NCBI GenBank assembly: GCA_002811645.1
Contig: PDIP01000144.1
Span: 17,564 to 50,904, forward strand
Source: Corallochytrium limacisporum Hawaii
Taxonomy: Eukaryota > Protista > Pluriformea
Length of the DNA: 33,341 nt
Direction of reading: 5' to 3'
Shown one piece after another: positions 1-33,341 of the stretch (the first letter of the stretch is position 1; every line of letters starts with the position of its first letter). The position numbers were made by a program, and so were the translations under genes. A model generated the notes under the pieces. It had not been told where the DNA came from. It ran no database searches and saw nothing but the letters and a program-made list of their open reading frames with translations.

Positions 1-127
1 AAGAGCAAAATATAATGAAATAGAATACAATCAATATAAATTATTATACAATCAAGATTGAAAAAGATCCTCGGGAGTCAAGGTTTTCGGAGTTTTGATC
101 CTGACATACCAGACAGAGGGTGGTACT
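1..127. repeat. Left copy of an AT-rich inverted repeat, truncated by the window start; probably a mobile-element terminus
   Basis: Reverse complement of 1-127 matches 33110-33236 with 3 mismatches (28/33209, 83/33154, 99/33138). About 33% GC overall and about 18% in bases 1-60. Similarity ends sharply at 127/33110. Confidence 0.93.
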
Positions 128-476
128 CAAAACCATGTAGGAGGGGGCCTATTTTCTTTGTTCGCGGCTTTTCGGGAGCCCCCCCCCCTGGGACCCTTGG
201 TTTGGTGTAAGGTGTACGAGTACGTGTGCAGGCTCCACAGAGCAGATGGGAGCGGGTCTGTCAGCCCCGCGTGTTCGGTCCGCGCCGTCGCTCGATGTGT
301 ACGTGTCAGAAGTACGAGTGCGTTGGTAATTTCGCAGGTATCTGAAGAAACAAACTTGTATGACGTGCAATGTGTGTGTAATAGATACTGTGATAGCTGG
401 AGAGTATTGATCGGATTGGTGCGTGAACATGGGACAATAAGGGAAGAGCCATTCTTCTCTTGTACAGTATCAAGTC

Positions 477-3400
477 ATGTTTAGATCCAAACAGTTTGTA
501 AAGAAGACCCGAAAGGGAAATATTGTTTCGGTCGCTAGAGAGCATTATTTGCGTGACGATATTTCATGTGGCAGCAAGGCTTGTGAGACCTGCAAGAGCA
601 GTCGCGATGATATGGTAAAGCCACTGAGCGAGGATCCAGAGTCTATGAAGACTCATTCTCTGGGTTTTCCTCATTACCTGGTGCTGGACACCAATATTGT
701 GCTACATCATATCGACCTGTTAGAAGCAGGGCACTTAAGGAATGTTATCATTCCGCAAACTGTCGATGACGAAGTAAAGAATCAAAATCTGGCCGTGCAC
801 ACCAAATTGCGTGGTCTGACGGGTAGCCAAGACTCCGGGTACTACCTCTTCAACAATGAACACCATCGTGCTACATACTTAGAACGTCAGCCCAATGAAA
901 GTAGCAATGATCGTAATGATAGGGCAATTCGCCAGGTAGCGTCCTGGTATGATGACCATCTCAAAGAGAAGACGGGTATCGGTACTGTCCTCATCACAGA
1001 TGATCGTGAGTGCCGAAGACGCGCAGAGACCGAGAATGGTCTTTACGCGTTTAGCATGCGTCAGTACGTGAACGGAGCATTAGAGCATGTGGATGAAATG
1101 ATGGACCTGCTGGGCAGGACCAATCGGAAACAGAAGCAGGAAGACCAGGGTGGTGTTAGCATGGCCGTAGACGATGAGGAGGAAGATGAAGACGAGAAGA
1201 AATTGAACGAAGTTCTCCGGGATGACACACTATATGCTGAGCATCTGAGTTTGGTTGCAGTGCAGAAGGGACTACGCGAGGGGCTGTACTTCAGCGGTGG
1301 TTTCAACCTAAGCTCGGATAATAGTTCCGAAGCGTTTGTGTTGAATGACGCGCATGACAAGCCGATTCTGATCAAGGGAATTAAGGACATGAATCGCGCC
1401 ACCAGCCGAGATGTGGTTGCTGTGCGCTTGTACCCAAAGGATCAGTGGCAGGTGCCTTCCCAAGAGTTCTCTGCTGAGCCCACATCGGAGGTAACACGGG
1501 TTGGTGAGAATATTGTACAGACGAAGATTCAATACCCGTTGGTTGCGCCGTCCAGGGAAGACAAGAAAGACGAAACTGTGTCAAGTCTCAAGCCGGACAA
1601 CCAGACGGACAGCATGGAAACAACAGTCAGTGAAGGCACCGATATTCATCCCACAGGCTACGTGGTGTCCATTTTGCGACGGAACTGGCGCCCATGCGTG
1701 GGTGTGTTACTACCAGAGTCTCTGACGCTGGAGCAGAATACTCTCTCCGGTGAGGAGCGTACGTTGGCTATTTGTGCGCGCCAGGGTAATATTCAAGTTT
1801 TCAAACCCCAAGACCGAGGTATCCCAAACATCTACCTTGTCACCCGGCAGGCCGCGCGATTAGCTGATCAGCGCATTGTCGTTGCTATTGACTCCTGGGA
1901 TCAACACAGTCTCTATCCTCGCGGTCATTTGGTAAAGAGTCTGGGGAAAATCGGTGATCGCAACACGGAAACCACTGCAATTTTGCTCGAGAACAAAGTC
2001 CCACACCACAAATTTAATGCTCGTATTCTGGCGGAGCTGCCTCCAATGCCGTGGATTGCGAATCAAGAGCTGGAGAAAGTCCGCAGTGGCGCCAGCGAAA
2101 AGATCCCTGTGGAACCGGCACTGGGAAAGAATCCAGAGCGAGTCGACTTGCGCCACCTAGAGGTCGTCAGTATCGATCCCCCGGGCTGTACAGACATTGA
2201 TGACACGCTTCACGCGCGTATGCTTGATGACGAGGCCCGCATTGCTGAGGTTGGTGTGCACATTGCTGATGTGACGCATTTTGTGAAGGCTGGTGGGACC
2301 ATCGACGCTGAGGCAGCAGACCGCGGCACCACTGTGTATCTAACGGATCGTCGCATTGATATGCTACCGGAACTACTGGGCACTGATCTATGCAGTCTAA
2401 AGAGTGATGTGGACCGGTTTGCCTTCAGTGTAGTCTGGAAGATTAAGGTCGACACTGCCGAGGTCCTGGAAGCACGGTTTTGTAAGTCGATTATCCGTTC
2501 TCGCTATAGCTTTGAGTACACGGAAGCCCAGGCGCGCATAGACGATATCAACAACAAGGACTCCATTACAAATTCGATGCGCCTGCTGAACAGCTTGGCC
2601 AAGATTCTCAAAGGTCAGCGCATGGCCAAGGGTGCCCTGAAGCTGGAGAGCCCTGAAATTAACTTTGACATGGACAACGAAACTATGGATCCGATCGAAG
2701 TTAGGCAGAAGAAGCACGTCGAGACAAACTCCTTGGTCGAGGAGTTCATGTTGCTTGCCAATGTTACGGTGGCAAAGAAGATTACTGATCACTTTCCGGG
2801 CGCCGCCGTTCTGCGACGCCATCCGGAACCACCAGCCTCTCGGTTTGAACCCCTTGTCCTGGCCGGCCAGCGCCTAGGATTTCACATTGACGTGACTTCA
2901 AGCAAGAAGCTTGCAGAAAGTTTGGATGCCGCCGATGTCCCAAAAAAACCGTACATTAACTCGCTTCTACGAATCCTAGCCACCCGATGCATGTACCAGG
3001 CCGTCTACTTCAGTTCTGGGAACTTCCCAGAACATCAGTTCCACCACTACGGTCTTGCTGCACCGATCTACACCCACTTCACTTCACCTATTCGTCGATA
3101 TGCGGACGTCCTCGTGCACCGCTTGTTGGCGGCAGCCATTGGCTACGAACCAATCGATCCAGGCTTGCTGGAAAGTCGCAAAGTTCAGAAGAGATGCGAA
3201 GTCATCAATCGCCGGCAGCGGGCTGCCCAGCAAGCCAGCCGTGCCAGTGTGGCGTTATATACCCAGATGTTCTTCCGTTCGAAGGGCGCCCAGGAAGAGC
3301 ACGCCTATGTCCTGCAGGTCAGGAAGAATGGTATTGGTGTGATGATTCCTAAGTACGGCCTGGAGGGCATCATTGTCTACGACGAGGCAAGCGTACAGCA

Positions 3401-3653
3401 TGACGCTGTCAATCACACGATTGATGTGCCCGACCCTCAGCAGCCGCAGAAGAAGGACCATGAGAGCAAGAGGAAGATGGTCCGCATAACTGTCTTTGAT
3501 GAAGTACTCGTGACCATGCGTTTGTCTGGCAACACATTTCTGGCTGAACAGATGATGGTACTCGACCTCAAGCAAAAGGTCATTTACGATACTCAGGAAA
3601 ATACTTCCAACGGTGATCAAGAACCCCCGACAAAGAAACAAAAAATGGTGTAG
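477..3653 (+). CDS. DIS3: Exosome catalytic subunit DIS3/RRP44 (PIN endonuclease plus RNB 3'-5' exoribonuclease)
   Basis: 1058-aa ORF. N-terminal KKTRKG..REHYLRDDISCG with CR3 cysteines; PIN motifs VLDTN, NEHH, ESSNDRNDRAIR, ITDD; RNB motifs SIDPPGCTDIDD, GVHIADV, HFTSPIRRYADVLVHRLL; S1-like C-terminal region; terminal basic NLS-like PPTKKQK. Confidence 0.97.
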   Translation: MFRSKQFVKKTRKGNIVSVAREHYLRDDISCGSKACETCKSSRDDMVKPLSEDPESMKTHSLGFPHYLVLDTNIVLHHIDLLEAGHLRNVIIPQTVDDEVKNQNLAVHTKLRGLTGSQDSGYYLFNNEHHRATYLERQPNESSNDRNDRAIRQVASWYDDHLKEKTGIGTVLITDDRECRRRAETENGLYAFSMRQYVNGALEHVDEMMDLLGRTNRKQKQEDQGGVSMAVDDEEEDEDEKKLNEVLRDDTLYAEHLSLVAVQKGLREGLYFSGGFNLSSDNSSEAFVLNDAHDKPILIKGIKDMNRATSRDVVAVRLYPKDQWQVPSQEFSAEPTSEVTRVGENIVQTKIQYPLVAPSREDKKDETVSSLKPDNQTDSMETTVSEGTDIHPTGYVVSILRRNWRPCVGVLLPESLTLEQNTLSGEERTLAICARQGNIQVFKPQDRGIPNIYLVTRQAARLADQRIVVAIDSWDQHSLYPRGHLVKSLGKIGDRNTETTAILLENKVPHHKFNARILAELPPMPWIANQELEKVRSGASEKIPVEPALGKNPERVDLRHLEVVSIDPPGCTDIDDTLHARMLDDEARIAEVGVHIADVTHFVKAGGTIDAEAADRGTTVYLTDRRIDMLPELLGTDLCSLKSDVDRFAFSVVWKIKVDTAEVLEARFCKSIIRSRYSFEYTEAQARIDDINNKDSITNSMRLLNSLAKILKGQRMAKGALKLESPEINFDMDNETMDPIEVRQKKHVETNSLVEEFMLLANVTVAKKITDHFPGAAVLRRHPEPPASRFEPLVLAGQRLGFHIDVTSSKKLAESLDAADVPKKPYINSLLRILATRCMYQAVYFSSGNFPEHQFHHYGLAAPIYTHFTSPIRRYADVLVHRLLAAAIGYEPIDPGLLESRKVQKRCEVINRRQRAAQQASRASVALYTQMFFRSKGAQEEHAYVLQVRKNGIGVMIPKYGLEGIIVYDEASVQHDAVNHTIDVPDPQQPQKKDHESKRKMVRITVFDEVLVTMRLSGNTFLAEQMMVLDLKQKVIYDTQENTSNGDQEPPTKKQKMV

Positions 3654-3662
3654 CATAGCCCC

Positions 3663-3668
3663 AATAAA
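3663..3668 (+). terminator. Candidate polyadenylation signal (AATAAA) for DIS3
   Basis: Canonical hexamer about 10 nt after the TAG stop; usage not verifiable from sequence. Confidence 0.4.
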
Positions 3669-4754
3669 GTCTAGAACCCACGCATGCAATCAATAATCAT
3701 TCTCGTTGGCTAGTGGCCTGCCAAAGATACGCCCGGCAGTCCTTTCCAGGCGTTCCCCGCATTACTTTCATCTGAACTCAGGACGGACGGACGGCAAATT
3801 TAGGCCCCGTAAGTCATTCCTTTTCTTTGGCACTTTTTTTCTTACTTTTTTGTTTTCCTCAGGAGGGGGGGTTGCCCCCGTTTTTCAAATCCTTGGCGCT
3901 CTGTCGCAAATCAGTACTGAATGTACCAGCACCGGCGTCCTGAGAGCAAGACAAAACCCTGGCACCGTCCAACCCCGTCGGGGGGACCACGGCTCCGTCT
4001 GAGTGTCGTCGTCGCCAGGGCGTGCGGGGTGGGGGAGTGCAGTGGCAGGGGGAAAAGCCATTGCTTCCCCCCTGCGAAAATTAATGAACGATTTGCAATT
4101 GCTATGTTGGGGAGAATATATTCAATAAAAATTTGGTACTGAAGGTGAAATCCGGAGGGTACGGGAGGTATAAATTTTCTTTGGGTCTCAGACGGGGAGG
4201 AGTGAGTACGGACGCGCAGGGGGCGACAGGAGGTTCTCCTCTGCCAGTGGTAACACTGCTGTTTTGGCAGAACTTGAGACCCGCACACTGGCTCTCGGAG
4301 TTGCGACAAAACACCGGTTGGTTGGCTATCGGAAACCGTGCAAGGGTCGGAAGGATATGACGAAGTGAGGAGGGGAGAAACGAGGGGGAGGGCCGTGGAG
4401 TCCTCATTCTTCTTTCGTGCGGAGGCGAGCCGGGTTCTCCGCGTTCGCGATTCCTTCGTTCGGTGGCATTGCATTCAATCGAGTCTGTTTGTGTGCTGTT
4501 TGTTTTGATCAGACTTGTCCATTTTGGAAAGGGGTAATGTGGTCTGATGATGTTGTTGTGGTCTTCACATGCAACGTTTGAATTCAATGGTTTCAAAGCA
4601 CACTAGCCATGTGGTCTTGAACTAGCAAAGGCCAGTCTGGTATTTAGTGTCTTTGATCCGGAACGCAGGATCAACAAAGCAACAGAAGTTATTCATAACC
4701 TGCAACTAATAAATTCAGGCGACAGAACCAAGCACTCACGTAAAACAGACAACC

Positions 4755-6683
4755 ATGCCCGTTCAGGTTTCTGGTCTCTCAGAGACTATTGCTTCCCAGA
4801 TGCGCGGTACTCAGAGCCGAGAGGCCAAGAAAGAGTCTCTCTATCGCAACCGTGGCAAGCTTTCCGATGAAGAGCAGCGTCGTCGTCGCAGAGAAGGATC
4901 CGTACAGCTGCGCCGTGATAAGCGCGAGGAATGCCTTGCAAAGAAGCGACATATGGGTTCCAATCGCGTGACCCGTTCCATGGCACGCAATGGCAGCTCC
5001 ATCGCAGAGGAGGCCGAAGAGCAGGACTCCGAGGTCACCAGTAATGCTGGATCTGACGCTGGATCCTCTTCATCAACTGATCAAGTCGCTCCTAACCAAT
5101 CCAATACTGCTAGTGGTGACCAATACTATGTGCCCACCTTGCAGAGGGATGGACAAGACGCATACCTGCAGTACCATGCGAACATCTTGCACCACCCAAA
5201 CGATGTGACCAATCTTGCATTCTATATGAAGAGTTTACGCGCTGTGCGAAAGCTCCTCTCTCGGGAATCCAACCCTCCAATCCAGGAGTGTATAGACCTT
5301 GGTCTAGTTAGTCGCTTTGTTGAATTATTGGAGATGGAGCAAGAAGGAATCAACAACGAAGCCGCCTGGGCACTCACTAACATTGCCAGCGGCACCCGCG
5401 AGCAAACTATGGCAGTAGTACAGGCCAATGCTGTAGAGAAATTCATGGTGATTCTGCACACCATCAGTCTGCGCCAGTCCACCAACAACACCCACAGTGG
5501 CAAAGATGACGCTATGGTCGAACAGTGTGTATGGGCGCTGGCAAACATTGCCGGTGACTGCACAGAACTGCGCGATCATCTGCTCAGCGTAGGCCTGTTG
5601 CCGGTGCTGCTCAACATTCTCAGCACTACGCACTCCATGCCAGTCGCACGTCAAGTGACATGGTGCATCAGCAATCTGTGCCGTGGACGCAACCCGTACG
5701 CTCCATACGAGGCCATTAAGTGTGCTTTCAAGCCCCTGCGTGACCTGTTAGAAAACATTACGGACACATCGCTCGTATCGGACGCCTGCTGGGCCGTCAG
5801 CTACCTCACCGACGGTGGCAATCAACAGATTGAGGACTCCATTGCCGTCGGACTGGTGCCGAGTCTAAGCAAGGTCCTGAGTACTTGGGGCGGCATCGGT
5901 ACCTACTCTCAGGGCAGCCAAAATGGAGAGAAGACCAAGTGCCAGGAAGCAGCAGCTCACACGGTGGTCACTCCGGCCCTACGTGCCCTGGGAAACATTG
6001 TTACCGGTACCGAGGCACAGACACAGGCTGTCTTGGACGAGAATGGAGTAATCGTGCTGAAGCACTTGCTCGGCCATGCCCGCGACAGTGTTCGTAAAGA
6101 GGCAATGTGGTCACTGTCCAACATCTGTGCCGGCACTCGCCCGCAGATCGCTTCGGTCATTGCAGCCGATCTTGTGCCCATCTTCGTAGAAAAACTTGAA
6201 GGTGCAGAGAGCAGCAAGGTCCGCCGTGAGTCTGCGTGGGCCCTGGCCAATGTCTGCAAAGGCGGCAGTGACGCCCAGGTCCGCCTCCTGGCTATGGCTG
6301 GTGCTCCCCGTGCCCTATGCACCATGCTCCACGGAAGCGAAGACAGCGGTCTTTTGGAAGCCATCCTCGACGCTCTGTTTACCCTGCTCAAGCGTGGACT
6401 GCAGGACGCACAGGAGGCCGGACGCACACAGAACCCTGTTGCTGACATCGTTGAGGAATGCGAAGGTCTGACGCGTATTGAGGAACTGCAGGATCATACC
6501 AGTGAAAAGATTTACCACCAGGCTGTGTCCATTATTGAAACGTTCTACGGATCTGAGGAGGACGACGATGATCTCGCAGGACTGATGCCCTCTACCGAAG
6601 GTGATGCCAGTACATTCGCGTTCGGCAGCACCGCACCGACTGCTGGGATGGGCGGTGTCCAGGGATCTCCATTCCATTTCTGA
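4755..6683 (+). CDS. Importin subunit alpha (karyopherin alpha; IBB domain plus ARM repeats)
   Basis: 642-aa ORF. IBB domain (RRRRREGSVQLRRDKREECLAKKR); ARM W-x3-N ladder (AAWALTNIASGT, CVWALANIAGD, VTWCISNLCRG, ACWAVSYLTDG, ALRALGNIVTG, AMWSLSNICAG, SAWALANV); IEELQDH..IY and an acidic/Phe-rich C-terminus. Paralogue class not assignable. Confidence 0.96.
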   Translation: MPVQVSGLSETIASQMRGTQSREAKKESLYRNRGKLSDEEQRRRRREGSVQLRRDKREECLAKKRHMGSNRVTRSMARNGSSIAEEAEEQDSEVTSNAGSDAGSSSSTDQVAPNQSNTASGDQYYVPTLQRDGQDAYLQYHANILHHPNDVTNLAFYMKSLRAVRKLLSRESNPPIQECIDLGLVSRFVELLEMEQEGINNEAAWALTNIASGTREQTMAVVQANAVEKFMVILHTISLRQSTNNTHSGKDDAMVEQCVWALANIAGDCTELRDHLLSVGLLPVLLNILSTTHSMPVARQVTWCISNLCRGRNPYAPYEAIKCAFKPLRDLLENITDTSLVSDACWAVSYLTDGGNQQIEDSIAVGLVPSLSKVLSTWGGIGTYSQGSQNGEKTKCQEAAAHTVVTPALRALGNIVTGTEAQTQAVLDENGVIVLKHLLGHARDSVRKEAMWSLSNICAGTRPQIASVIAADLVPIFVEKLEGAESSKVRRESAWALANVCKGGSDAQVRLLAMAGAPRALCTMLHGSEDSGLLEAILDALFTLLKRGLQDAQEAGRTQNPVADIVEECEGLTRIEELQDHTSEKIYHQAVSIIETFYGSEEDDDDLAGLMPSTEGDASTFAFGSTAPTAGMGGVQGSPFHF

Positions 6684-6844
6684 AGCCAAACACTTGGTTG
6701 CCCATCAACCTGTCCCATTTCCATTATCCCGTAGTAGCCATGATACATCATCACGCATAAACGATTACTTATCCTATATCTACAAACTTTAGGAACACAT
6801 TTTGTTCGGAAACTGCAATGTATCACAACTACCAAACAAACAAC

Positions 6845-9541: not shown

Positions 9542-10287
9542 GTTTGGATGCTATTGGTTCAAATTCTCTCGTTCACAATCAATTCCTTCGTCCTCTGCCC
9601 CCATTAGATTTTCCGATAGCCGATCAAAGAACTAAGAGTTCGAGTAATCTGACGAACGATGCGTTGTAGTCCGATGAACACATTCTAATTAAGCAATTCA
9701 ACTCACAAACACCTACACAAGACAATGTGTCATTCAATTCTGATACGCATCAGTGTGCGACATCACACAAACGAGACCATCGCACAAAGTTGCTGATTCC
9801 TTGGTAGCCCGAAGCCTGGCCAGGCAGCGAAGCCCCCGTACCCCTCTCCCTAAAACTCGCACCGCCCGCGCAGAAGAAAACAGCGGGGTCCCCCGTCCCT
9901 CCAGATCCGAGGCCCCCTTACTAGGACCCAACAAGGGCCATGCAGAGGAGACGAGGAGGGGAACCGGGTTGTGGATTGGTTCTTTCATCTTCCGTTCCAA
10001 TCCTCGTTGATCCACCTTCCCAAATCGTAGCGGCCGAAGGAGCGATTGAGATTGCGCACTGGAATTTACCATCATTTCCGAAATATGTGTACGGCTTATG
10101 ACCCCTTCAAGAGAATGTACCTCGGCAAATCCACCCGTATTACTTGTTTACCCTCACTGCACCGGATCAACCATGCGGTTGGCTTCGTTGGAGATCTCTA
10201 GCTATTTGAATGTTGACCACCGATAGCCCATACGGAGGGAGCTGAGTGGTTATCTGACTCAGATCGGTTAAAGAAAGTCAGGCCGCC
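9542..10287. promoter_or_regulatory. Probable bidirectional promoter region between the divergent channel and ZCCHC4 genes
   Basis: 746 bp between head-to-head start codons, with a central GC/C-tract-rich patch (about 9820-9965). Inferred from gene geometry only. Confidence 0.55.
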
Positions 10288-11889: not shown

Positions 11890-13272
11890 AGAAAGACTTG
11901 AACATGGACCTCTTGGGTTGTTCATGGAGATGCACATCTTGCCCTTGAGGTTTTCGGATCAAATCACCTCAATACATGACACAGCAGTTTTTCATCTGCC
12001 TGCGCAAAAGGACCTCGGTGCAGGTAACCACCAGCCACGCAAAAGGGCTGTCTTTCACTTGGGGAGAAGGGGAGCCGGCGCTCCCATAGTCAATGGCTCC
12101 AAGTGTCAAACCGTCACTTCCTCCTCCCCCGCTCCCGCTCCCTTTCCTGTGGCCCGTTCTCCCGACCCAGCTTCCCAGCTTTGTTGGCAAGGAAAACTAG
12201 ACCGCACGGCCAGCCAACGCAAGGGAAAAAACCCAGATTCCCATTAAACAGAGTGATGCCTGTCACATGGTCCTTATGCTGTAACCTTTTCTGTGACGGC
12301 TTCTACGGTGATTTTTCTAAGAAAATTTCCCGATTTTGCTGTCTCCCAGTATTCAATGGCCCCCCCGCCCGGGTGGGGGGCCGGCGCGAAAACTGCGGTA
12401 GATCTCTTGTGGGCTGGAAAGTAACTCGCCCGAGTTTTCAGTCCGGTTTCGACGGGTATGGCTGGCACAGAAGGAAGGCACGGCCACAAGGCACAAGGCT
12501 AGAGACGAGATTATCGATTTGGTCCCCCCCCTCCCTTCCTTCTTCTTCTTCTTTCATTCCCGTGTGTGCCGTATAGTAAGTACATAACCCGATTGTGTCC
12601 ATGCGCTACCAATACGGGTATCTCCAGGCGGGTGTTCCCGAAATCCAAAGAAGACTTCTCAAAGCCTGACCATGATCCCTCCCGGCTTGGACACTCCGGG
12701 TTGTCGGGCGGTAAGGTTCGTTAAGTATCAAAGGGGCTGGTATGTTCAGTATCCAAGTCCATCCCAGTTGGTCTGCAGAATCGTTCCACCACCAACGTAG
12801 CTGGCCCTGAATTCACAATCAAACCCCGGGTTGGTGACCGGTGGCCCCTGGAAAAACCCGTTATAAGATCCTGTTGGGAGGCCAACTATTGCGAATAGGT
12901 CGTGATATTGATGAATAGAGGTAGTGTATAATAAGTACATATCAAATTCCTGAATCCTTGTATAACAAAAGGTTTGTTGCGTATCCCGAGAAAGAAAGGG
13001 CGAAGGTATCAAACGACGAAGGTCAAGGCACCAGTCCTCGCGCTGTCGTGTACCTGGCACAGTGTCTCCCTTTGCCGCACCAAAGCGGCAGAAAAATGGG
13101 AGCCAGCAAGCCAGAACCGACAAAGTAGAACAGATAAGAGCCGCACGAACGGTGCGAGTAAGGGTGAAACGCCCCCGATCAAAAAAGAAAAAAATGCAAC
13201 AAGAAACCCAAAACAATGGCACCCAGGATATCTACAGGGCCCGGGACAGTCGTCAACTCTCTCCCTATCTAG

Positions 13273-13292
13273 CTCTCTCTCTCTCTCTCTCT
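13273..13292. repeat. (CT)10 microsatellite followed by a G-tract
   Basis: Directly visible; G-rich run at 13298-13311. Confidence 0.9.
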
Positions 13293-13855
13293 ACAAAGGG
13301 GGGGGGAGGGGACCGTTGAGAGAGATCAAGGGGTAGAGACACTTGGGATGAAGGCGGGGGGAAAGGGATAAGAACAGCGGTCCAGGCGATACGGAGGACA
13401 TGAGGAAGCGATAAGGAGCCAGCGACCGACGTGAGGCCCAAGGAAAGGGAAGGGGGAGATGGACACGACGGTGAGTAACAACCCAACCCCGCACATGAAT
13501 ACGCAAAAGGACAACTTGAGTCAAGAAGATTCAGTACATTTAATACTGAATACGTGCCATGATGGTCGCGGTTTGGACATCTGATGGGTTTTAGCTCCGC
13601 CAATTTCAACGAAAAATTACGATTTCTGCGCAGGTACTGCCCTGCTCCTGGCGATGCTGAGAGTGAGTTCAGTAGCACTCACACGGCACAGCCCCCCCCC
13701 TTGTCCGCTCGGGATCGAGAAAAACAATAGCGGCCCCCCTTCTCTTCTCCCGCTCTTTTTAACGGGTGTCGGCGGGTGCGCATGTAAGAATCGAGCGAGT
13801 GCGGAGGAGCAGCGGGGGAGGGCGGAGTGAGCTGAGGGTGATACCCACAAAAGGC

Positions 13856-13946
13856 ACAGAGAGAGAGATAGGGAGGGAGACAGAGAGAGAGAGAGAGATA
13901 GGGAGGGAGACAGAGAGAGAGTGAGGGAGGGAGACAGAGAGAGATA
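13856..13946. repeat. GA-rich minisatellite, about 3.5 copies of ACAGA(GA)nTAGGGAGGGAG
   Basis: GGGAGGGAGACAGAGAGAGA occurs three times with variable (GA)n length. Confidence 0.88.
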
Positions 13947-14778
13947 TGAATTGTGGAAGAAAAAGAAAGAGCAGGGAAGGAGGGGGGAGAGGGAGGAGAG
14001 AAGAAGGTGCGGCGTAGGTAGAGGACCAGGAACCGGATCGGCGGTAGTAGGGGAGAGAGCGGCCTGCGTGCATTGAATCTTGCAGTTTGCAAAGAAAAGC
14101 GGGGGGGGGGGTGTTGTCTTATGACACACACGGGGTGTGATGAGTACGAGTGTAGAATGAATGGCTGCCGCTGCCCTGCTTGTGTCCCTCTTCACGCTTC
14201 GTCGTCGTGCCCTGGGGGGTATGAGCTCGTAGGAGGACGAGCGGGGCAGAAGGGTCTCAACCCGGTTGATACCGCACCAAGAAGATCGGGCCATCCCAAG
14301 GGACAAACCCGGTTCAAACACCGGCCCGGCCAGTGGAGACGGCTACGAACGAACATTGGCGACTGTCCGTGGAGATGTTTAGCCTCGATACGGAAACCCT
14401 GTGGAGATGGGTTATGTGCGCCTGAGTAATTTGTTATAGCTTCGTTACCAGATGATTCTCGGATCGGCTTCCTGGGGTTGGTATTTAGTCCTCGACACTT
14501 TGATGTATATGCCGCAAATCTCGTGACTGTTATTCGACAGAAACGATTGTCGAGTTTGCGACCGGGCCTGATCACGAAAACAGACAGTGTAAAGGGACAG
14601 CGTGACCGCAAACCGAACAGTACGACGAAGAGAAAAGGTCATCCTCCGAACGACTGAAGCGACGATGATGTTCTACGTTGTGTAGATTCTAACTGGGACC
14701 GTCTTCTGATTAGCGCGAGGGAAGACCAAGGAAACACACAAAAACACACACGCATAGTATACAGGTACACACATCACC

Positions 14779-22700: not shown

Positions 22701-22973
22701 ACCGACCAGTTGGGGCATCTGGGTCATCTTGACAAAGAAGGCAAGGAATACACCAAAGACACCGGAGGGCACCAGTGCCGCGACCACGAGACCGGCAGAG
22801 GGGTTATTGGAAACTGTGCCACCGATGGCAAACGCCGTACCGATGATACCATATATGTTTCCACGTACCGCGGTGCGCTGGTTCCTCAGACCCTGAATAC
22901 AGAGAATGTAGAAGAGTACCGACGGTACAAATGTGTAGTATGCGGATAGCTTATCCAAGTCAATTGTCTCCAT
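19791..22973 (-). CDS. NNT: Proton-translocating NAD(P)+ transhydrogenase, single chain in beta-alpha (PntB-PntA) order
   Basis: 1060-aa ORF. N-terminal PntB membrane domain (MPQLVGLLNS, IGGADMPVVIAVLNSLSG, CKAMNRS); NADP-binding dIII (PGYGMAVAQAQ, HPVAGRMPGHMNVLLAEA, GANDTVNPAA); charged linker; NAD-binding dI (ECRVAMTP, GAGVAGLAA, GGYAK, DLAARTGGNC); PntA C-terminal helices (LHTPLMSVTNAVSG, NICGGYAVTHRMLQMF). Confidence 0.96.
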   Translation of the reverse strand: METIDLDKLSAYYTFVPSVLFYILCIQGLRNQRTAVRGNIYGIIGTAFAIGGTVSNNPSAGLVVAALVPSGVFGVFLAFFVKMTQMPQLVGLLNSFGGAAAALASLGSYYQADLSTTKLGEHVNLLVIYFGVLTGVVTFSGSLVACLKLEGIINSRLEYRGMGYANIAMILSLIGLAAAFLALDRPDDGIIAAAVAIFISLVFGYHAVMAIGGADMPVVIAVLNSLSGWAGAFAGFASLNFVLVVGGSLVGGSGAILSYVMCKAMNRSLMHVLVGGFGEGGKKPAPAASGAVAEQREASELKPDAVAKQLLHAKSVIIVPGYGMAVAQAQHTISAITDLLISRGVNVRFAIHPVAGRMPGHMNVLLAEARVDYEIVKEMDEINPDFPDTDVVLVIGANDTVNPAAEDDPSSDIAGMPVLRVWTSHSTIIMKRSLGAGYAGVQNPLFFKDRCHMCFGDARKSTDAILAKLQEMSSNGDDKKTAAEDAAARKEAEARKAEEAEEKARKAREERLAKRPAPSMTIAVTNEADGDECRVAMTPDKIESLLDIGIETRVLAGAGVAADFPDRLFESVGATIVDGVQPLLDQKTAIQQNLTFVKLAEPTVEEIKELPEGIQMLAPLNPGKNRELLEALAAKRITAYATDAVPRTTKAQALDTLSAMGNVAGYRAVVEASQRFGSFFTGQITAAGKVEPAKVLVVGAGVAGLAAIGAAANLGAIVRGFDVRKPVKEQVESMGGHFLTVDIEEDGAGAGGYAKEMSKAFLDAEFALFRQQAKEVDIIITTAMIPGRPAPKLILDDMVGSMRPGSVIVDLAARTGGNCTQTRVNEAYVTDNGVHIVGFVNLASRMAKVSSNLYAANMENFFKLYQQSEGQDDIVTKMRVTNAEGEVCYTPPQPGAPAAKPAPTKNDDDSSSSTSDSDPKKGNPETAVDMDPRDDGLSWWDRRSWKEQQALGLLIMLILVVGCGFLFPESYFEYLLVFELSVILGYFLIWDVSPSLHTPLMSVTNAVSGIVVLAGLEQIGSGFDTTYNYLGFISAFVAMINICGGYAVTHRMLQMFMHGK

Positions 22974-23747
22974 CTTGGAATGTGTTTGTTAGGCAGTTCA
23001 CGGTTGGATGTTACTGACTGCTTTGCGCATTGAATGCTAGCAAATAGATTTGCTTTCTTGTGCTGTACTTAAGTGTGCAGTTTGTCCAAAAGACATTTAA
23101 CGTTGTGTCCGAACGAAGAAGAAAACTTGCTATAAATGTGAAGGTTTTCTTCCTGAATGACCGAGAGAAAATGTTACAATTTCCTTGCGGTTGTCCGGAT
23201 CTGTGGTTTTACTAAAATACCTTTTTGGCTAATTCTTACTACAAACTCTCCGAGAGGTAAAGGCATTCAGTGAAGCAGGGAACGCTTAGGTACCTTCACA
23301 GGATCCCCTGGGGGATCCTTACCTTTATCTCACATACAACCAGGCCCAAATTTAGTCCCGTGGGACGTGTTCGAATGACACTTGGGCTTCCAAACACAAC
23401 TTTCGTTCTCTATCCTTGTGCGTCTGTCGCAAACCCCGGAATTAAAACCCAAGCCAAATGCCCCCAAAAAAGTTCCCAAAACGGGGACCTTATGGTCAGC
23501 AGCTGCACTAGCAAAAAAAGAGAGAAGGGACCTCTCCTTCCGCTCCCCGTTGGGCACAGCCACCCACCCACCCCCAACCGGCGGTGATCAGCCGACAAGA
23601 GCAAGGGACGTTTTAATATGGAGCGGGAATGGGGAGAGTGCGGGGGCTGGCGGTAATGGGAAAACTCGAGAGACTCTCCCCCTCCCCCCCCTTCCCTTCT
23701 ACTCCTCTCCCTTCCTTTTATTCGCTTGCTCCCCTTTCCCTTCTTCC

Positions 23748-24013
23748 NNNNNNNNNNNNNNNNNNNNNNNNNNNNNNNNNNNNNNNNNNNNNNNNNNNNN
23801 NNNNNNNNNNNNNNNNNNNNNNNNNNNNNNNNNNNNNNNNNNNNNNNNNNNNNNNNNNNNNNNNNNNNNNNNNNNNNNNNNNNNNNNNNNNNNNNNNNNN
23901 NNNNNNNNNNNNNNNNNNNNNNNNNNNNNNNNNNNNNNNNNNNNNNNNNNNNNNNNNNNNNNNNNNNNNNNNNNNNNNNNNNNNNNNNNNNNNNNNNNNN
24001 NNNNNNNNNNNNN
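23748..24013. other. Assembly gap (266 N)
   Basis: N run flanked by polypyrimidine/C-tract sequence. Confidence 0.99.
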
Positions 24014-25401
24014 CCCCCCCCTTCCCTCCCCTCCTCCCAGGCCTACCCCTTACCCCCAGGGCCAATTTTTCACATTGCCTTTTTCTTCCATTTTTTTTAA
24101 AGGTGCTTTTTCACCCTACCGCCCCGGTGGGACGGACACGGGGGAGGTAAGGGAGGTGGTGGTGGGGGGGGGGGAAGAGTGAGAGGGGGTTTTTTTTGTT
24201 GATGGCCGAGAGGGGAAGGTAAGCCCCGGGGGGAGGGGGAATGGAGAGGGAGCGCAGCGCGCCCGGACAGGCGCAAGGCGGCCACGCAGTGCTGCAGATC
24301 AAAAGTGCCACACGGAGCGCATGAACGCTTAGAGTGGCAGCAGTTCACACACACTGACTCACTTTTTTATGCCTCCATTCCGGAGCCACTCGACCCGAGC
24401 GGAGGGGTGGGCGAGAGAATAGACCCAGGGCAGCAATATCGGAGCGCCATGGAGGAAACGCAGAGATGCGGCTTGCGCGCGAAAATAGAGAGGGGGGGGG
24501 GAGGAGGAAGAGAGAAGGAGAACCACACGACTCGCTCTGCCACTCGCATCACAAAACCAGCCACACACTCTCTTTGTTCCTCATTTTTTTTTGTTTTTGT
24601 TGGTGCTGGTAGCAGCGCCGAACTATTGACACCAAGGCAAAACATTGATAAAAAAATATGGGCCCTTGGCCCGATAAATCCGCAAGAACAAAGAATTATG
24701 CCATCGGGGCTGGCAAGCGAATAAGAGGCAGTAGATCGGTCCAGCACTTGGCGAAATTCACACAGTCTGTCAAGGGCCGAAATCCCGTCCATCGATTCTC
24801 AGTTACCACCAGGAGGTGTGTTGCACGGGGTTCATGTGGTTGATGGGCGCCCTAGATGCGCGCTGCTGCCCTTGTTTTCTGCGTCGACGCCCGCATTTTG
24901 TGGTTCGGGCACGGGGGGGTAAGCAGGGCACAAGCAGTCCAGCAACGACCGGTAAATTGCCTATAGTTTCATTACTTGGGGACGAGCAAGCCCGCCACCC
25001 CCCCTGGCTTTCGGTCTCCGGGGAGAAGGAAAAAAAGTGGAACGAATGGAAAAAAAAACCAAAAAAAGAAAAAAGTTTTTCTGGTCGCACCGTCGTCGCA
25101 GATTATGCTGCCCGTACGAAACCATTTTGGCCTCCTGCTGTATCATTCTGTGCCCAGAGCAGTATTGACAGTACGACGAACCGCAACCCAACCTACGCAC
25201 TCTGTCTGCCTGCCCCCAGCACAAGGCAGCAGGCTACGAAGCAAAAAAAAGGCAAATTCTTTTACAATACTTCCTCCCAGCCACAGCTCTAAATTGGCTT
25301 TCCGTCGCACGTACTTTTTTGGGTAAATCACCGGCGTACATTTACTACCACTGAGTTCTGATTAAGGAAATTCCGACCTGGATCCACCAAGCGTGAGGTC
25401 C

Positions 25402-25425
25402 AGAGAGAGAGAGAGAGAAAGAGAG
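25402..25425. repeat. Imperfect (AG)n microsatellite
   Basis: Directly visible. Confidence 0.85.
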
Positions 25426-27295
25426 GTGGATATTTCATTTAGAGTTTTTCCCGTCTCCCGGACCGTTGAAGAATGATCTGCAAAAAAGATTGCTCTAATG
25501 GTGTCTTTTCTTTCTCTGGCCAAGGGCTCCCCTTTCGGTACTGGCGCTTGTGCCCTTCCAGGCACAGGTTCTTGTGACGGATGGAAAATGGAAAAAAAAA
25601 GGTTTGCAGCGCGACCGGGTTCCCATCGTAGTAGTGTCGCTGTCCAAGACTCAGGTCGACAAGATCGCACACTTAACACATGTGCCCGCGCATGCCGCAT
25701 GTCAGCACCAGATGGAAAAAGAGTCACCATCGACCACAGACACAATCGAAAGGTGGGACATTAACGAACCCTGCACGCACGATAGTGGACTGTCCTCGCG
25801 AACCTGCCCATGCGGAGTCAAGTACCAGAAGGGCCTCCATCTCTTCCCACCAATTCTCTGCAGATAAATTCGTTAGTCATTGGTCAGGGAATCTTTCATT
25901 AAAGACATCCGAGTCTTGTGCCGTGTGTGTAGCTGATCCGACTTTCCAGCACCGCAATAGAAAATACACCACCACCGCCCACCAACTCACGCGGAGTGCC
26001 GGTGATTTTCACTTTTATTCGAAGAAGTAAAAGGAGCGGTGGCCCCCCCCCCCGGCCCGGGGGAGGGGGAGCGGGAATGGAGAAGTGGGTAGGAATGGGC
26101 TCAACCCCCCAAAGGACTACAGGCGTCAGATGATTTGCCGGAAATCACTACGGGTCCAACAACCTACGCAAACGTGTCCCTTGCCAGTGTGATATGTAGG
26201 CGCTTGGCAGTTGGGGGCTCGGTGGTGGTGTGATCCCTCCGTAGGTGTCTGCTGGTTGGGCTGGTACATTCTGTACTGCAGCCCCGGGGATAACTTTCTA
26301 CGGGTGAGGGGTGTGTACAACTCGGTCAGAGAAATTGCAGATTTTCTTGCCCTTTCCCCCCGGTACGTTAGCAAGGGACCTAGGGAATCGTTCGGGTGCT
26401 GGAAGGACAGCGTTAGTCATTGATATCTTCAATACTTCCTTATCTATGGAAAGTGTATGAGATGAAATCAATGATAGGACACAATATAGTATTTTTTTTC
26501 AATTTCCTGCTATTCTTCAATATCTATCTCCGGTGTGCGCGCTGCATCCTTGGCTGAACCCTTGCCCACTGCCCCTCTTCCCTTGCCATCGTTAGCTCCT
26601 TTGCAGTCGGTCCAGCAGCGCTTGCTGTAGTGGGGAGGGGGGGAGGGGAGAGGCGCGGAGTTTGTGTGTGCTCGCTCGCGCATGGGAGGAGGTTCCGGAG
26701 CGGGTCATTTGCGTTGCCCGTGTGCTTCGGCTCTGCGTAAACCTTACGATCTCAGAACAACCTAAACAAAAGAATCGAGAAAAACACCAATCCGATGGAT
26801 TTAGTAGTGAATGTACTGAAGAATTGCCAGTCACGGGGGTTGTTTTTGTTAAGGAACGATGGAAATTGTCCCGCACGGGTCGCGAACCCCGTCCGGTCCG
26901 AGGCTTCGCTCCATTGTTTTCGTCGATCCCCTTCCCCGCTTCGTAGAAACTGACCCCTTCCCGGTCCATGCTCCCTTGCTTCACTATGGAAACTCTTCAA
27001 TCACTTCAATGAGTCTGCGCCGAATACCTTTCCCTCACCCACCCTTTTTCTGCTTCAGCCTAACCTTTCCCTTTTCTATTTTTTTTTGACGTATTCCCCT
27101 GCGCTCTTCAGATCTTGGTTCTCCTACGACCGGAAAAAAACATGGCGGGTAACACTGAAACGAGAATTACGATCGAACAAGAAAAACCGACGTAAAAAAA
27201 AAAGAAAAGGTGGGGGGGGGGGCTGAGCGGGGAGACGTTGACGTAGTTTTGCATGGTGTTGGTTGTACCGGAGAACTGGGGGCCGTCGGTTGTGG

Positions 27296-27595
27296 NNNNN
27301 NNNNNNNNNNNNNNNNNNNNNNNNNNNNNNNNNNNNNNNNNNNNNNNNNNNNNNNNNNNNNNNNNNNNNNNNNNNNNNNNNNNNNNNNNNNNNNNNNNNN
27401 NNNNNNNNNNNNNNNNNNNNNNNNNNNNNNNNNNNNNNNNNNNNNNNNNNNNNNNNNNNNNNNNNNNNNNNNNNNNNNNNNNNNNNNNNNNNNNNNNNNN
27501 NNNNNNNNNNNNNNNNNNNNNNNNNNNNNNNNNNNNNNNNNNNNNNNNNNNNNNNNNNNNNNNNNNNNNNNNNNNNNNNNNNNNNNNNNNNNNNN
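27296..27595. other. Assembly gap (300 N)
   Basis: N run followed by a G-tract. Confidence 0.99.
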
Positions 27596-30500
27596 GGGGG
27601 GGGAGAAGGGGGAGGTGGGCTAAACCCCTGGCAGGCACGAAAGGGGGCCGGTATTGCGCAAGTAACACAGCGACTTTCTTTGTTCTTCTAATCTCCGGGG
27701 GAGGAGGGTTTTCTCGGTTGCAATTCCCCAGAGAGATCGAGAGAGTGCCGTGAATAGGCTACGGGTTTCCCCAAACATTAAAAAAACAAACAAAAATAAA
27801 GAAAATATACGTTCCGCTGTGAAATACATGTTTATTTTTAGCCACTTATTATACATATGGGCATATCGTAGATGAGGTGCCGACAGCCCGGCGGGTCTGA
27901 TGGGGAGGTGAGAATGGGGGGGTTTTATATTTCCCTGCGCACTAAAAGGTATGGAAACCAAACCACCCCTCCGGGGTCGGTCAGTCCGAAACCCGCAGGT
28001 GGTACGCGGAAAAGGTGCCAGAAATTGCGTAGCCAATCACAGCACCCGGGGGAGGGAGGGGCAAGTCTCTGTGCCCTCCATATTTTTTTTTTCTTTCCTT
28101 TTTCTCCCTCCTTCTTTCCTTCTCCTTTCTCGGTCCTTGTTTTTTTCTTGAAACCTCACACCCCCGTCCCCCCTCTCTCGATCCCCTCTCCTATACTTGC
28201 TGAATGGGCGAGAGGACCTACCACGGAGAAGATACAACACATACCGGGCAGGACGACGATCTTGGTGGCGCTTTTCCGGCACACACCCCGAATCATTGTG
28301 TCCATTAGTATGCAAAATTTACCAGGGTGTTTACTGTTTTGCGCAATTCAAACGACGACGACGGAAGGGGGGAGAGGGGGGGTCGTTGGCCCGCTCTGTA
28401 CTTTTTCCTTCCTTTCCGGAACGACTGGTATGCGTTAACCCGCTGCTTGGCCATGGCCTCACCAGCAAACCCCGATTCCTCCGTCATCCTGGTTCTTTTT
28501 ATCGCTTCGTTTGTCCGTCCTTCCACTCCTCGCTCCTGGTCTCCCCTTCATTCTCGTTCTGTCTCCCTTGGGATGTAAGGAAGTGGTCGTCTTGCTGATG
28601 CGCCATCATCATCAGGTACTTAGACTCTCCTCCCCCGGGAGGGTCGGATTCCTCTCCCCTCCTCCCCCCAACTTCCCGTGCCTCCCCTTTCGTCAGTGCC
28701 TGAGCGCAAGGAAATGAAAGGGGAGGCAGGTGGTAGGCGAGTGGACACGAAGGAAGGAGGGGGTTCGACGAGAAAAAGACAAAAGAAGACCTTCGAGTAA
28801 AGAGACACACCGGCAAAAAATGAGATACACACTCGAAGGCAAGAAAAAGTAGGTCCACAGCTTGCTACAACAAACCTCTGTGTTCACTGGCGGTGAGTTT
28901 TTGGACTTCCTGTATGATTTGACACGGGGGACACACCGCAACAGCACATGAGCGGATCGTCACAGCAGCCAGCGACACACATCGGAGTGTCATGGCATGC
29001 GATCAATTCACACAGACACCAACTCATTGATGCTGTTCTTGTCTGGGCCCCTGCGATGACGACGATGAGGAGCAAGACCGAATGACCGAAGCCTGTTTCA
29101 TCCCGAACGATTGCAATCCATGGAGGGCATGCACGGAACGGATTACTGCGGTATGAAGGTCTGAGGCGGTTCGCTATCAAATTTACAGCGTATCATCATT
29201 TCATTCAACGGCGGCAGCAACATTCTGCCTGGATTGTCGCTGATGCCAGTTTTTGCACGACATATAGTATGTATTCTTTGTATGGCATCATACGATGGTT
29301 CGGCGGCGAAACACAGTCCAAGGGAAGCGGACGTGGCCCTCTTGGCCACACAGTCAGAAACCAGACATATGGAGACACGCTTGGCATGGTGATAAGCCCC
29401 GCCTCTTGCCGCCCACCGGTTGTACCCTTGCCTGCTTCTACTGTGAGCAAGCATGCCAAGACATGTTATGAAATGGAATCAGGGACAGGAACAATGATGG
29501 GACTCGGTTTGTGGAATGCTCTCTGTTAATCACAACGACCACTGACCGCCACAAAATAAGACGGAACGACGACAACAACAACGAAGATCACACGTGGCAC
29601 CCCGACTGATGGTCGAAACCAAAAGTTGCAAGCAAGCCGGCCACTGTGGCGTACCAGTAAAGAGTTTGTGACCAAGTTTGAGCATCCAGCAGGGACCTAG
29701 CACACAAATGCAGAGTTCACGAACGAGTACATGTCATTCTGATGGCATGTCGGGTAACTGCCGGATGTCCTCACTGTTGATGATCGAAATAGATAGCGCA
29801 TGCTGTTTACCGCTAATCACCAATGAATTCCAATTTGAACAGTACTTGGCCCAGAACAGAGGATGGGGATTTCCTTTTGGTATTAGGCGATTACTCATCG
29901 ATTCTATAAGCTACCTCGCATCTCCATATTGTAATTGTCCCCACCTTTATCACTTTATCATCGGAATTCCCATTCCTAAGGGTTCATGATATCTGAATGA
30001 GCAAGAGTTCCTGGTAAACATGCACAAGATACGTGCCAACACTTGGGTACGCTCAGAATATGGTTACGGTGACGATGATGGCCCGGCCAGGGAACAATGG
30101 CCACGGGCCGTGGACGATCTAGCTGAGCTGTAATGAACTCTGTTGGGATGTGAAAAGATCTGTATCGTACGGCCAGCTTTGGCCGGGTTTCAAACAGCAT
30201 CACATCGCATCGTGACGGTCTCCCTGCAAAATCTGTCCAGGCACCCCAAACGTGAAGTCGACGTATATGTACAAGGTGCATAAAACTGATCCCTGAGAAC
30301 CTATAGAAGTAGAAACTCGACAATGAAAGCGCACACAGCAGCTTACAAAAAAGTTCATACGCAACAAAAAACGAACTAAGGTACGAACCTACGAAGGCAT
30401 CCGCACATCACCAGCTGACGCCCAGGATAGTTCGTCGCGTACCCACACCCAAGCAAAAACCCATTGCACGATAAGAAAGCACTCAAAACGAGAGTCAATG

Positions 30501-30927
30501 CTTTCAGCCAGAAATCAACAGATGGATGGATGGGGATCCGCGCTATCACCTTGATACTGGTCTTCGGTGGTAATTTTCCTCCCCAGACGGCCACTGCTAT
30601 CGAATTCGTGGTTCCTATTTTGAAGTAAATCTGAACGCAAACGTTCCCAGAGCCACTATCCGTCTCCAAAACCGTCAATCGGTGACTCACAAAACCGCCA
30701 TAGAGCGCCTTCAGGTTGGCGCAACCGACCGTGCACGTCTTACGAGCTGCTTACCCCTCGCCTACTCAGTCACAGGGAGGGCCGCGGGGGCGTAAACTAA
30801 AGCACAGATAACACGACAACGCACCAAATGTTTCTTCCTCTTTAATCACACAGCCCAGTATCAGCTTGCGTTTTTTGGACGTGTGTATGTGAATGTGTGT
30901 TATGTGATCCAGGTAATAAAAACAGGA

Positions 30928-30950
30928 GGGAGGGGGGGAGGGGAGGGGGG
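30928..30950 (+). other. Canonical G-quadruplex-forming motif
   Basis: GGG-A-GGGGGGG-A-GGGG-A-GGGGGG: four G-runs with 1-nt loops. Confidence 0.6.
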
Positions 30951-33109
30951 ACTTTTCTGGTTCCTGTTTTCTAGCTCCTTCCGCCAGCTGGACTTGTATG
31001 GTCTTTGGCGCCCTACCTGAGGGGCAGTTGGTGGTGATGTGTGTTCCGTGCATTCGTCAAGTGGGTTGTTGCTGGCGGCGTTCGTTTTGTGTTTATTTGT
31101 ATTTGTTGGCAACACCAAGAGTCGCCAGTCCTCATCATCATGCAAAGTGACGGACCCACGTCCATGTGATATCCAAATTTCTCAAGGCTTGGGTGGAGGT
31201 CTATGCCCAGTTTGGGGGTCCTTGGTGTAGGATTGGATGAAGCAGAACAACACAGGTGTATCACAAAAGGGAATGGTGCCAAATTCGCTACCATTCAGTC
31301 ATCGAACAAACTAACACCATCATTGTTCTGGTTGTACATGCTATGTACCTTTCTTGCCGACATGGTACCGGAATGGGAAGTGAATCGTCTCTGTATGGGG
31401 GCGCGGTCGTGGCGGAAGCGAGTTCGAAGCACGACGACCGCAGCATAGTAAGTATCAACGGCACAAATTAGGGACGGTTCATCTCACGGAAAACCAACTG
31501 TGCAGTCTCGTCATGACCAAGATGACGGAATCAACACAAGGATTCGACCATAGTTGCGGATCAAAACAAAAACATTGCCAGACCTTCTGTGTTGACAGCA
31601 CCTTGTCATGGATTTGAACAATGTGGACTGTTGCAGGTCTGTACTCAACGGCGGGCCGGAGAACTTCACACGTTGACGGATTAGCAGGGATGCTCTGGGG
31701 ATCAAGGTTCTTTCTCTCTGTTATCTCATCTTCCTCTGACCACTTGTTGCATTGTCAATGGGCGGGTATGAGGTTGTGACGGTGCTCCGCGGTCCGAACG
31801 CAGAGCAATTCTCATGGTTGTATCACAGATTGGTTGAACAGCACGTCGGCTATGGCCCATCTGCACCATAGAATACAAGCAGACAACCAAGCTAATTGGC
31901 ACCGGGTGTATACCACGAGGCGCCTACTAATACGGGCGGGTCTCCGGCCTTCTGTCCATGGCCTTTAGGTTGTTCGGTGGTGGTTGCTGTTTGGGCGGCA
32001 GCGTCATCTGCATCAACAAACCGTAAATAGAACCCCGTCTGGTCCAGAACCGGAAATGGGTATTACACTTTCCCGATTCACATCAAGTCATGAGACATCC
32101 GGACCCTTTAAGTTTCTAGTCGTCACCACTGTTGGAGTTTAGTCAAACTCTAGCACCATGTCATGATGACCAACTGACGCAGGTACTTCTCAGCAAGATC
32201 CGGAAGCTCCCAACAAGTCCCCGCACTCGGAGAGCACCAAACCGAAGCCACAAGAGCGGGGGGTCCCCCCCCCCATAGATGAATCCGCCGAATCCGACAA
32301 TGCGAATAAATAGACTCCCTTTTGAAGAACCGGCCCTGCTCGCCCCCAATGCATTAGGGGGCCTATTTTTAATGGCACACACGTACATTATTTATGGTGC
32401 CAAAGCGTAGCGGGGAAATCTTTGCAAGCACCCACCCCCTCTTCTCTCCATTTCGACAGGGTACTTCTGCGAGGAAGGAGGGGAGGGATTTGGGGACACA
32501 CCTGGTGAAGAATGTGCGGCCCGGCCCGCACAAGAAGGTAGCTTATACAGGGACCTTGTCCCGAGGTGTCACACAATTGGGGACCTGAAGAATGCGTTTT
32601 TCATCTCCTCCGAGATGAACGAACGTTGACAGCTCGTCAACCCTGCACGACCGGTACCACCAAGTACATATTACTTTGGACCCCGAGACTTGCCAACAAG
32701 AACAGTTTCCTGGCAAGGGGCAAGGTTGGTAGTGGTGGTGGTTAATTTCTTCTTGCAGGACAAAGTACCAAGTCACAGGCAGCAGAAAGTTGTGGAAGGT
32801 AGGGCAGCGCCATTTATGCCCTGCTTCTAGGGGACACATGGTAAGTCATCCAAACGCTGCGAAGGGATCACCCTGTCATTGTCCTCAGTTGTCGAGACAG
32901 AGCAGCCGCAAGTAATTGGGATGAATGTGGATGTCTCACATATTACGGCTTCAGGAACGCATGCTGTGCCATCCAAAGGAGACCTGTGAGGGGATCACCC
33001 ACTTGTCGGTCCCAGCTTGGGTGACAGATCACCCAGCAGTGTCAAAGATGGTGGTGCAAATTCCGATGGACGGCGGGTCCGCGTACCAACGCTATCAATT
33101 TACTTTCCT

Positions 33110-33341
33110 AGTACCACCCTCTGTCTGGTATGTCAGGGTCAAAACTCCGAAAAACTTGACTCCCGAGGATCTTTTTCAATCTTGATTGTATAATAATTTA
33201 TATTGATTCTATTCTATTTCATTATATTTTGCTCTTTTTAACAATCATGCACAAATATTTCAATAGCTGATTCAAACGAAGAGTCCCTGCTACTCTCAAA
33301 AATGGACTATTTTGACTTTGGCTTGACATTGAACACATCGT
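33110..33341. repeat. Right copy of the inverted repeat (33110-33236 matches 1-127; AT-rich continuation to the window end); probably a mobile-element terminus
   Basis: 124/127 identity to the reverse complement of 1-127. Bases 33237-33341 are assumed to belong to the same element because the left copy is cut by the window edge. Confidence 0.88.

Follow-up and report, generated by a model that had tools for sequence, protein, structure and literature searches.

An inverted repeat bracketing 33 kb of the Corallochytrium limacisporum genome is very probably formed by two copies of a young Tc1/mariner-type transposon

Transposons of the Tc1/mariner superfamily (IS630-Tc1-mariner), represented by Mos1, Sleeping Beauty/Tc1 and Hsmar1, are classically 1.3–1.7 kb in length and encode transposases of approximately 340–360 amino acids, and in mariner and Tc1 there are 34 residues between the second and the third catalytic residue. 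Here we describe an element of approximately 2.05 kb from Corallochytrium limacisporum Hawaii which shares with this superfamily a TA on both flanks, short terminal inverted repeats and a single open reading frame (ORF). It is found at both ends of a 33,341-nucleotide stretch of contig PDIP01000144.1 (C49 in the numbering used below), which extends from C49:17564 to C49:50904 and is referred to as the window. We propose, with a probability of roughly 93%, that the window is the stretch between two independent insertions of a young, multi-copy Tc1/mariner-type transposon, which stand in opposite orientation and lie tail to tail. The genome searched was the 24,109,830-base assembly in 286 contigs, and all results were read from assembled sequence.

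A search for inverted pairs of at least 40 nt revealed just one in the window. Its arms, at 1–127 and 33110–33236, are 127 nt long, 98% complementary and separated by 32,982 nt; this confirms an earlier note on this DNA, which had described the first 127 bases as the reverse complement of 33110–33236 with three mismatches. The mismatches lie at 99/33138, 83/33154 and 28/33209. With a GC content of 33–34%, against 52.6% in the interior, the arms are AT-rich. The inverted repeat cannot be due to chance, since the 16-nucleotide terminus TACCACCCTCTGTCTG has two occurrences in the window, at 110–125 on the minus strand and at 33112–33127 on the plus strand, and none in 100 shuffles. The earlier note had also reported a sharp inner boundary. 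This is borne out by a start base common to all copies in the genome (window 33110–33112), outside which the DNA is unrelated between copies; the exact position had to be moved, the true edges of the element being at 123/124 on the left and 33113/33114 on the right. Bases 126–127 and 33110–33111 are flanking DNA beyond the element, yet they fall within the matching arms because of a G-TA-C target preference, which is described below. Likewise, the length proposed for the repeat, at least 127 and probably at least 232 bp, stands as a minimum and not as an extent: what is seen is one end of an element of approximately 2.05 kb, the two ends of which share only 14–15 bp.

The genome-wide search with 33110–33341 that the earlier note had suggested was run and returned no fewer than 91 candidates for 3' ends; scores were obtained for 40 of them, with 96–100% identity over the whole 232 bases. 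Nearly every copy proceeds inward for 232, 244 or 286 bases and is then replaced by a run of N. The other end of the element is found to the left of the window, where base 1 is preceded by a scaffold gap of 1,881 N (C49:15683–17563); the 70 bases on the far side of this gap are repeated in at least 82 places. This 5' end reads ...ggtgg TA CCACCCTCTGTCTG AGAATATTG..., opening with the same 14–15 bases as the 3' end, inverted. Thirteen two-ended copies were fetched, and 12 of them have the structure TA + CCACCCTCTGTCTG + interior + CAGACAGAGGGTGG + TA between unrelated flanks, with core-to-core spans of 1,994–2,082 bp. The terminal inverted repeat, CCACCCTCTGTCTG(G), is perfect over its 14–15 bp and inverted at both termini of these paired copies; the thirteenth copy has one mismatch in its 5' repeat.

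In an exact-pattern census, 89 3' ends and 81 5' ends were counted, and the reversed-pattern control gave 0. From these ends, 63 5'/3' pairs can be formed, whose spans have a median of 2,036 bp (range 1,741–2,104 bp) and whose interiors are almost all gaps; with the unpaired ends counted there are approximately 107 loci. In the copies examined the interiors are runs of 1,584–1,881 N; since these lengths vary, each run gives an estimate of the gap size and is not a mask of constant length. The median pairwise identity is 97.6% over the terminal 125 nt (496 family pairs). A TA was present at all of the 54 ends examined and a G at position -3 in 45 of these, indicating a probable G-TA-C target context, in which insertion would occur mostly into GTAC. 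The flanking TA, read from occupied sites on both sides of the 12 paired copies, appears to be the target-site duplication.

The left-hand copy (copy A) occupies C49:15614–17688 in the plus orientation. Both of its ends are present, with TA on both sides and a core-to-core span of 2,071 bp. The window holds its last 123 bp (1–123, plus strand), comprising the 3' untranslated end and the terminal inverted repeat and recognized from the terminus, the TA and the paired 5' end. The TA on its 3' side is at 124–125, and the partner of this TA precedes the 5' end, at C49:15614–15615. The copy had been thought to be cut by the window edge; it is indeed truncated, at the scaffold gap inside it, and the edge is not an arbitrary one, because the window opens at the first base after the 1,881 N. 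To the left of copy A, contig C49 continues for a further 15.6 kb of unique sequence with several long ORFs. The right-hand copy (copy B) begins with its 3' end at 33114 and is in the minus orientation. The TA on its 3' side (33112–33113), assigned from the terminus pattern, adjoins a G at 33111 in the usual G-TA context. The last 228 bp of this copy (33114–33341, minus strand) show 96–100% identity to at least 40 other copies and are cut by the end of C49, the length of which is 50,904 bases, so that the right edge of the window is also the end of the contig. Copies A and B therefore lie tail to tail, and for this reason the same end faces the interval between them (128–33109) on both sides.

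There is nothing special about the pair at the window compared with other pairs in the family. Copies A and B are 97.6% identical over the 125 nt that they share, which is the median of the 496 family pairs, 51% of pairs being at least as similar. Copy A has two private substitutions and copy B common subfamily variants, and nothing indicates that the arms have been homogenised. Copies that neighbour each other on one contig form 28 pairs, of which 19 are direct, six tail to tail and three head to head, i.e. 9 of 28, or roughly one in three, are inverted. The five other tail-to-tail pairs have 0.7, 6.5 (C173), 34.5, 46 and 122 kb between the copies. The closest of these is a 702-bp miniature of the window: contig C169, in its whole length of 1,002 bp, consists of two 3' ends inverted around approximately 670 bp of unique DNA.

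The published assembly of C. limacisporum, a genome of 24.1 Mb with almost no introns, was built with SPAdes on 100-bp paired reads together with 3-kb mate pairs, and GapCloser was then applied (PMC5560861). The interiors of the copies were left unassembled because the copies are 96–100% identical and longer than the reads. We infer that a 2-kb repeat which exceeds the read length and falls short of the mate-pair span would give a short run into each end and an estimated gap between the two or, wherever scaffolding was unsuccessful, a contig end. Contig termini fall within the family in at least 20 cases, at the starts of C2, C12, C26, C37, C51, C66, C68, C101, C166, C169, C192, C196, C203, C271 and C282 and at the ends of C25, C49, C71, C169 and C221. 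Contig C66 (C66:119923–122601) finishes, in its last ~25 bases, in GGTTAGGTTAGGGTTAGGGTT, a telomere repeat of the TTAGGG type; 1.1 kb inside this terminus there is a 3' end of the transposon, which departs from the family after approximately 330 bp. Long poly-C/poly-G and CT/GA runs were observed alongside smaller gaps and a contig start (window 23700–24060 and 27190–27620, and C49:1–40), and homopolymer-rich intergenic DNA looks like a second common cause of assembly breaks.

The coding sequence was recovered from a copy on contig C186, in which a single 537-codon ORF extends over C186:67209–68819 (L034:4210–5820). It stops 263 bp before the 3' terminus, and the AT-rich tail which fills these 263 bp is the sequence seen at both ends of the window; the AT-rich window ends are hence the untranslated 3' tail and the terminal repeat. 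Pfam analysis of this ORF gave a match to DDE_3 (E=1.6e-6, 28.5 bits; curated cut-off 28.6), a weak one to HTH_Tnp_Tc3_2 (E=3e-3, 18 bits; cut-off 31.5 bits), for which a paralogue gave an E-value of 2.6e-6, and a weak one to DUF7769. Four paralogues from elsewhere in the genome (loci L071, L072, L073 and L077; 34–64% identity) were aligned with it, and in this alignment of five paralogues D207 (in DEKW), D335 (in DNAxxH) and D383 (in SPDLNxLD) are invariant. Together, motifs and alignment give an apparent D-D-D triad, in which 127 residues separate the first two catalytic positions and 47 the last two, and there is a C-terminal extension of approximately 100 residues. At least four related transposase families, with 28–64% identity, are present in the genome.

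An AlphaFold model, built on a shallow alignment, has a mean predicted local distance difference test score (pLDDT) of 52. The secondary-structure order of the model, beta-beta-beta-alpha-beta-alpha-beta-alpha, fits what would be expected of an RNase-H-like fold, and helices of mixed confidence are predicted over residues 27–188. Foldseek placed the transposases of Mos1, Sleeping Beauty and Metnase/SETMAR at ranks 1–11, 13, 15 and 21 (E-values down to 3.8e-6), and the nearest neighbours according to a protein language model belong to Tc1-like, DDE_3 and DUF7769 clusters. By its TA flanks, short terminal repeats, Pfam matches, catalytic motifs and fold search, the element is very probably a cut-and-paste transposon of the Tc1/mariner superfamily, and its ORF a predicted transposase with an RNase-H-like D-D-D catalytic domain and putative helix-turn-helix DNA-binding domains.

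The resemblance to known members includes the DDE_3 match and the weak HTH_Tnp_Tc3_2 match, the DEKW, DNAxxH and SPDLNxLD catalytic motifs and the structural matches to Mos1, Sleeping Beauty and Metnase; with mariner in particular it shares an aspartate as third catalytic residue. It differs in the size of the transposase (537 amino acids, with the long C-terminal extension), in the strong G-TA-C target context, and in having a DDE_3 score just below the cut-off and no match by sequence in the PDB. Nor does it have the 34-residue spacing of mariner (DD34D) and Tc1 (DD34E) in the narrow sense, the distance between D335 and D383 being 47 residues. No named DD45-48D transposon group was found in a literature search. 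Other classes of element can be set aside. Polintons/Mavericks and large elements with long terminal inverted repeats also have an AT-rich terminus with a sharp boundary, but they are 15–20 kb in size and make a 5–6-bp duplication, compared with approximately 2 kb, 14–15 bp of shared ends, a TA flank and a DDE_3-type transposase here; a Polinton-like terminus is ruled out by the size, the TA flank and the ORF. A long-terminal-repeat retrotransposon or a long-inverted-repeat element is also ruled out, given ends that share 14–15 bp, the DDE_3 ORF, and the absence of any inverted repeat of at least 25 nt in the resolved copy on C186.

From this we suggest the following course of events. The transposase would bind both short terminal repeats, excise the element and reinsert it at a TA, preferably within GTAC, the TA being duplicated upon insertion. 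At most of the copies, the short-read assembler left a scaffold gap, or otherwise a contig end, and the borders of the window are one such gap on the left and one such contig end on the right. The bracket accordingly results from the break points of assembly and window together with the chance relative orientation of neighbouring copies, and is no functional unit. It is mostly an ascertainment effect, in that windows end where the assembly ends, which is often in this transposon. The earlier note had itself favoured two insertions of a young mobile family at which the assembly broke, and this has held up well: there are approximately 100 copies, the junctions are canonical, and a gap lies in one copy and a contig end in the other.

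Several points weigh against this interpretation. The DDE_3 score is 0.1 bit under the curated cut-off, and a search of the PDB by sequence gave no match at E-values up to 1, either with the single transposase or with a five-sequence profile. The mean pLDDT of 52 is poor, which calls for caution on the Foldseek matches. The interior of the element was read in one copy only, that on C186, whose 5' end falls in a gap, and the full-length element has for this reason been pieced together from different copies. Copy B is known by its 3' end alone, its other end and far flank not being next to C49 in the assembly. Finally, with an invariant TA duplication, target-site duplications are uninformative on past recombination between copies.

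The unique interval between the two insertions (128–33109) carries long uninterrupted ORFs. By Pfam analysis these code for DIS3/Rrp44, importin-alpha, a ZCCHC4-like N6-adenine methyltransferase, an adenylyl cyclase and a fused beta-alpha NAD(P) transhydrogenase, and there is also a large ORF without a Pfam match. The genes are followed by approximately 10 kb lacking long ORFs and containing two gaps with low-complexity flanks, in keeping with the earlier description of housekeeping genes plus a desert. The earlier note had also reported no transposase, integrase or telomeric array between the copies, which we can support: tblastn with the transposase against the window revealed no homolog (best E=0.77), Pfam and tblastn detected no recombinase or transposase among the interval genes, and no telomere repeats were found in the window. 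An Rfam scan of the window and of C49:8000–17900 at the gathering threshold gave no match. The interval occurs once in the genome, save for a GA-rich simple repeat around 13,850–14,000 and a single match of 100 bp.

The two gaps in this interval, at 23748–24013 (266 N, in CT-rich/poly-C low complexity) and 27296–27595 (300 N, beside poly-G low complexity), are unrelated to the transposon. Inspection of their flanks revealed poly-C/poly-G and CT/GA runs with no long ORF, and no reading frame depends on either gap. Transposon copies hidden in both of them were considered and ruled out, there being no termini in the interior and homopolymer low complexity on the flanks. The GA/CT-rich simple repeat, GAGAGAGATAGGGAGGGAGACAGAGAG..., at 13843–14006 and 13257–13292, recurs at more than 80 places in the genome with 77–92% identity and is ordinary low complexity. 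The other repeated sequence is a segment of approximately 100 bp, which is present at 26573–26679 (plus strand) and at C49:15499–15595 (minus strand), with 79% identity, and was found nowhere else in the genome. The first of these lies in the ORF-poor stretch, approximately 600 bp before the gap at 27296; the second is 18 bp from the 5' end of copy A and just upstream of an ORF. The segment has no Rfam match. It may be a promoter or 5' leader that a pair of paralogous genes have in common, one of them hidden in the "desert".

The earlier note had also raised the possibility that the 33 kb is an invertible or mobilisable segment, in which the inverted copies recombine and flip the DNA between them, or the pair moves as a composite by means of its outer ends. 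In principle, two copies of approximately 2 kb which are ~98% identical and inverted do constitute a substrate for homologous recombination, and the outer ends of a tail-to-tail pair would be two correctly oriented 5' terminal repeats. Bacterial composite transposons such as Tn5 and Tn10 likewise consist of two inverted copies of one element around unrelated genes. At this locus, however, the cargo would be 33 kb of single-copy eukaryotic housekeeping genes, and nothing suggests a movement of the unit; its interior occurs once in the assembly, and no second locus of the unit was found. The interval contains no recombinase or transposase, and the efficiency of Tc1/mariner transposition drops steeply with length, such that a composite of 37 kb would be very inefficient. 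The arms have not been homogenised, their 97.6% identity being the family median and copy A having its two private substitutions. The same arrangement is seen at five other places, with anything from 0.7 to 122 kb between the copies, and with six tail-to-tail pairs among 28 it is as frequent as chance orientation predicts. We therefore find no support for an invertible or mobilisable segment and regard it as very unlikely.

The two insertions might also be an artefact of assembly, one or both junctions being chimeric, or the join across the 1,881-N gap being so, in which case the copies would not truly flank the interval. The data are of a kind to invite this suspicion, i.e. a short-read assembly, a repeat longer than the reads, estimated gap sizes and a right-hand copy situated at a contig end. 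Against it, both junctions have the exact canonical terminus, the TA and the G at -3, like the other ends examined, and copy A, whose two ends are correctly ordered and oriented, spans 2,071 bp, inside the family range of 1,741–2,104 bp. A contig which runs from unique DNA into a repeat is, moreover, the behaviour expected of a de Bruijn assembler when it works correctly. We consider a chimera at this locus very unlikely.

The proposal that the 33 kb represents a small linear chromosome or replicon with inverted subterminal repeats has the coincidence of the right-hand copy with a contig end in its favour, but is contradicted by the scaffold, in which the left-hand copy is internal to C49 with its 5' end and 15.6 kb with long ORFs to its left, by the lack of telomere repeats in the window, whereas the real contig end of C66 has repeats of the TTAGGG type, by the occurrence of the same sequence at at least 20 other contig ends and inside 63 scaffolds, and by the ordinary nuclear genes in the interval, and its chances are negligible.

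As a claim about genome architecture the bracket carries no weight, being a by-product of transposon copies, gaps and the cutting of windows. Other windows of this genome which border a large run of N or a contig end should often begin or end with one of two sequences, the first starting with TACCACCCTCTGTCTGGTATGT and the second with TACCACCCTCTGTCTG(A/G)GAATATTG, and some of them should look bracketed by an inverted repeat because about a third of neighbouring copies (9/28) are inverted. Were the tail-to-tail pair nevertheless to serve as a recombination substrate, both orientations of the 33-kb block would coexist in the population or culture, or else a 37-kb composite with a 5' terminal repeat at either end would move occasionally. 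We think this a very long shot; if true, a young transposon family would be driving structural variation in the very compact genome of a unicellular animal relative.

In the genome as a whole the family, at approximately 100 copies of 2.05 kb each, takes up about 0.2 Mb, which is approximately 0.9% of the 24.1-Mb assembly, almost all of it written as N. Repeats in the published genome were annotated against RepBase only, giving a reported repeat content of 1.8% (PMC5560861). Such an annotation would miss most of the family because scaffold gaps conceal almost every copy, and the published figure probably omits most of it. Relative to the classic families, the predicted transposase stands out by its length and its non-canonical spacing of 47 residues. 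Given the 96–100% identity between copies (pairwise median 97.6% over the terminal 125 nt) and one intact ORF, the family may still be active, and the transposon is a candidate endogenous transposon tool for C. limacisporum.

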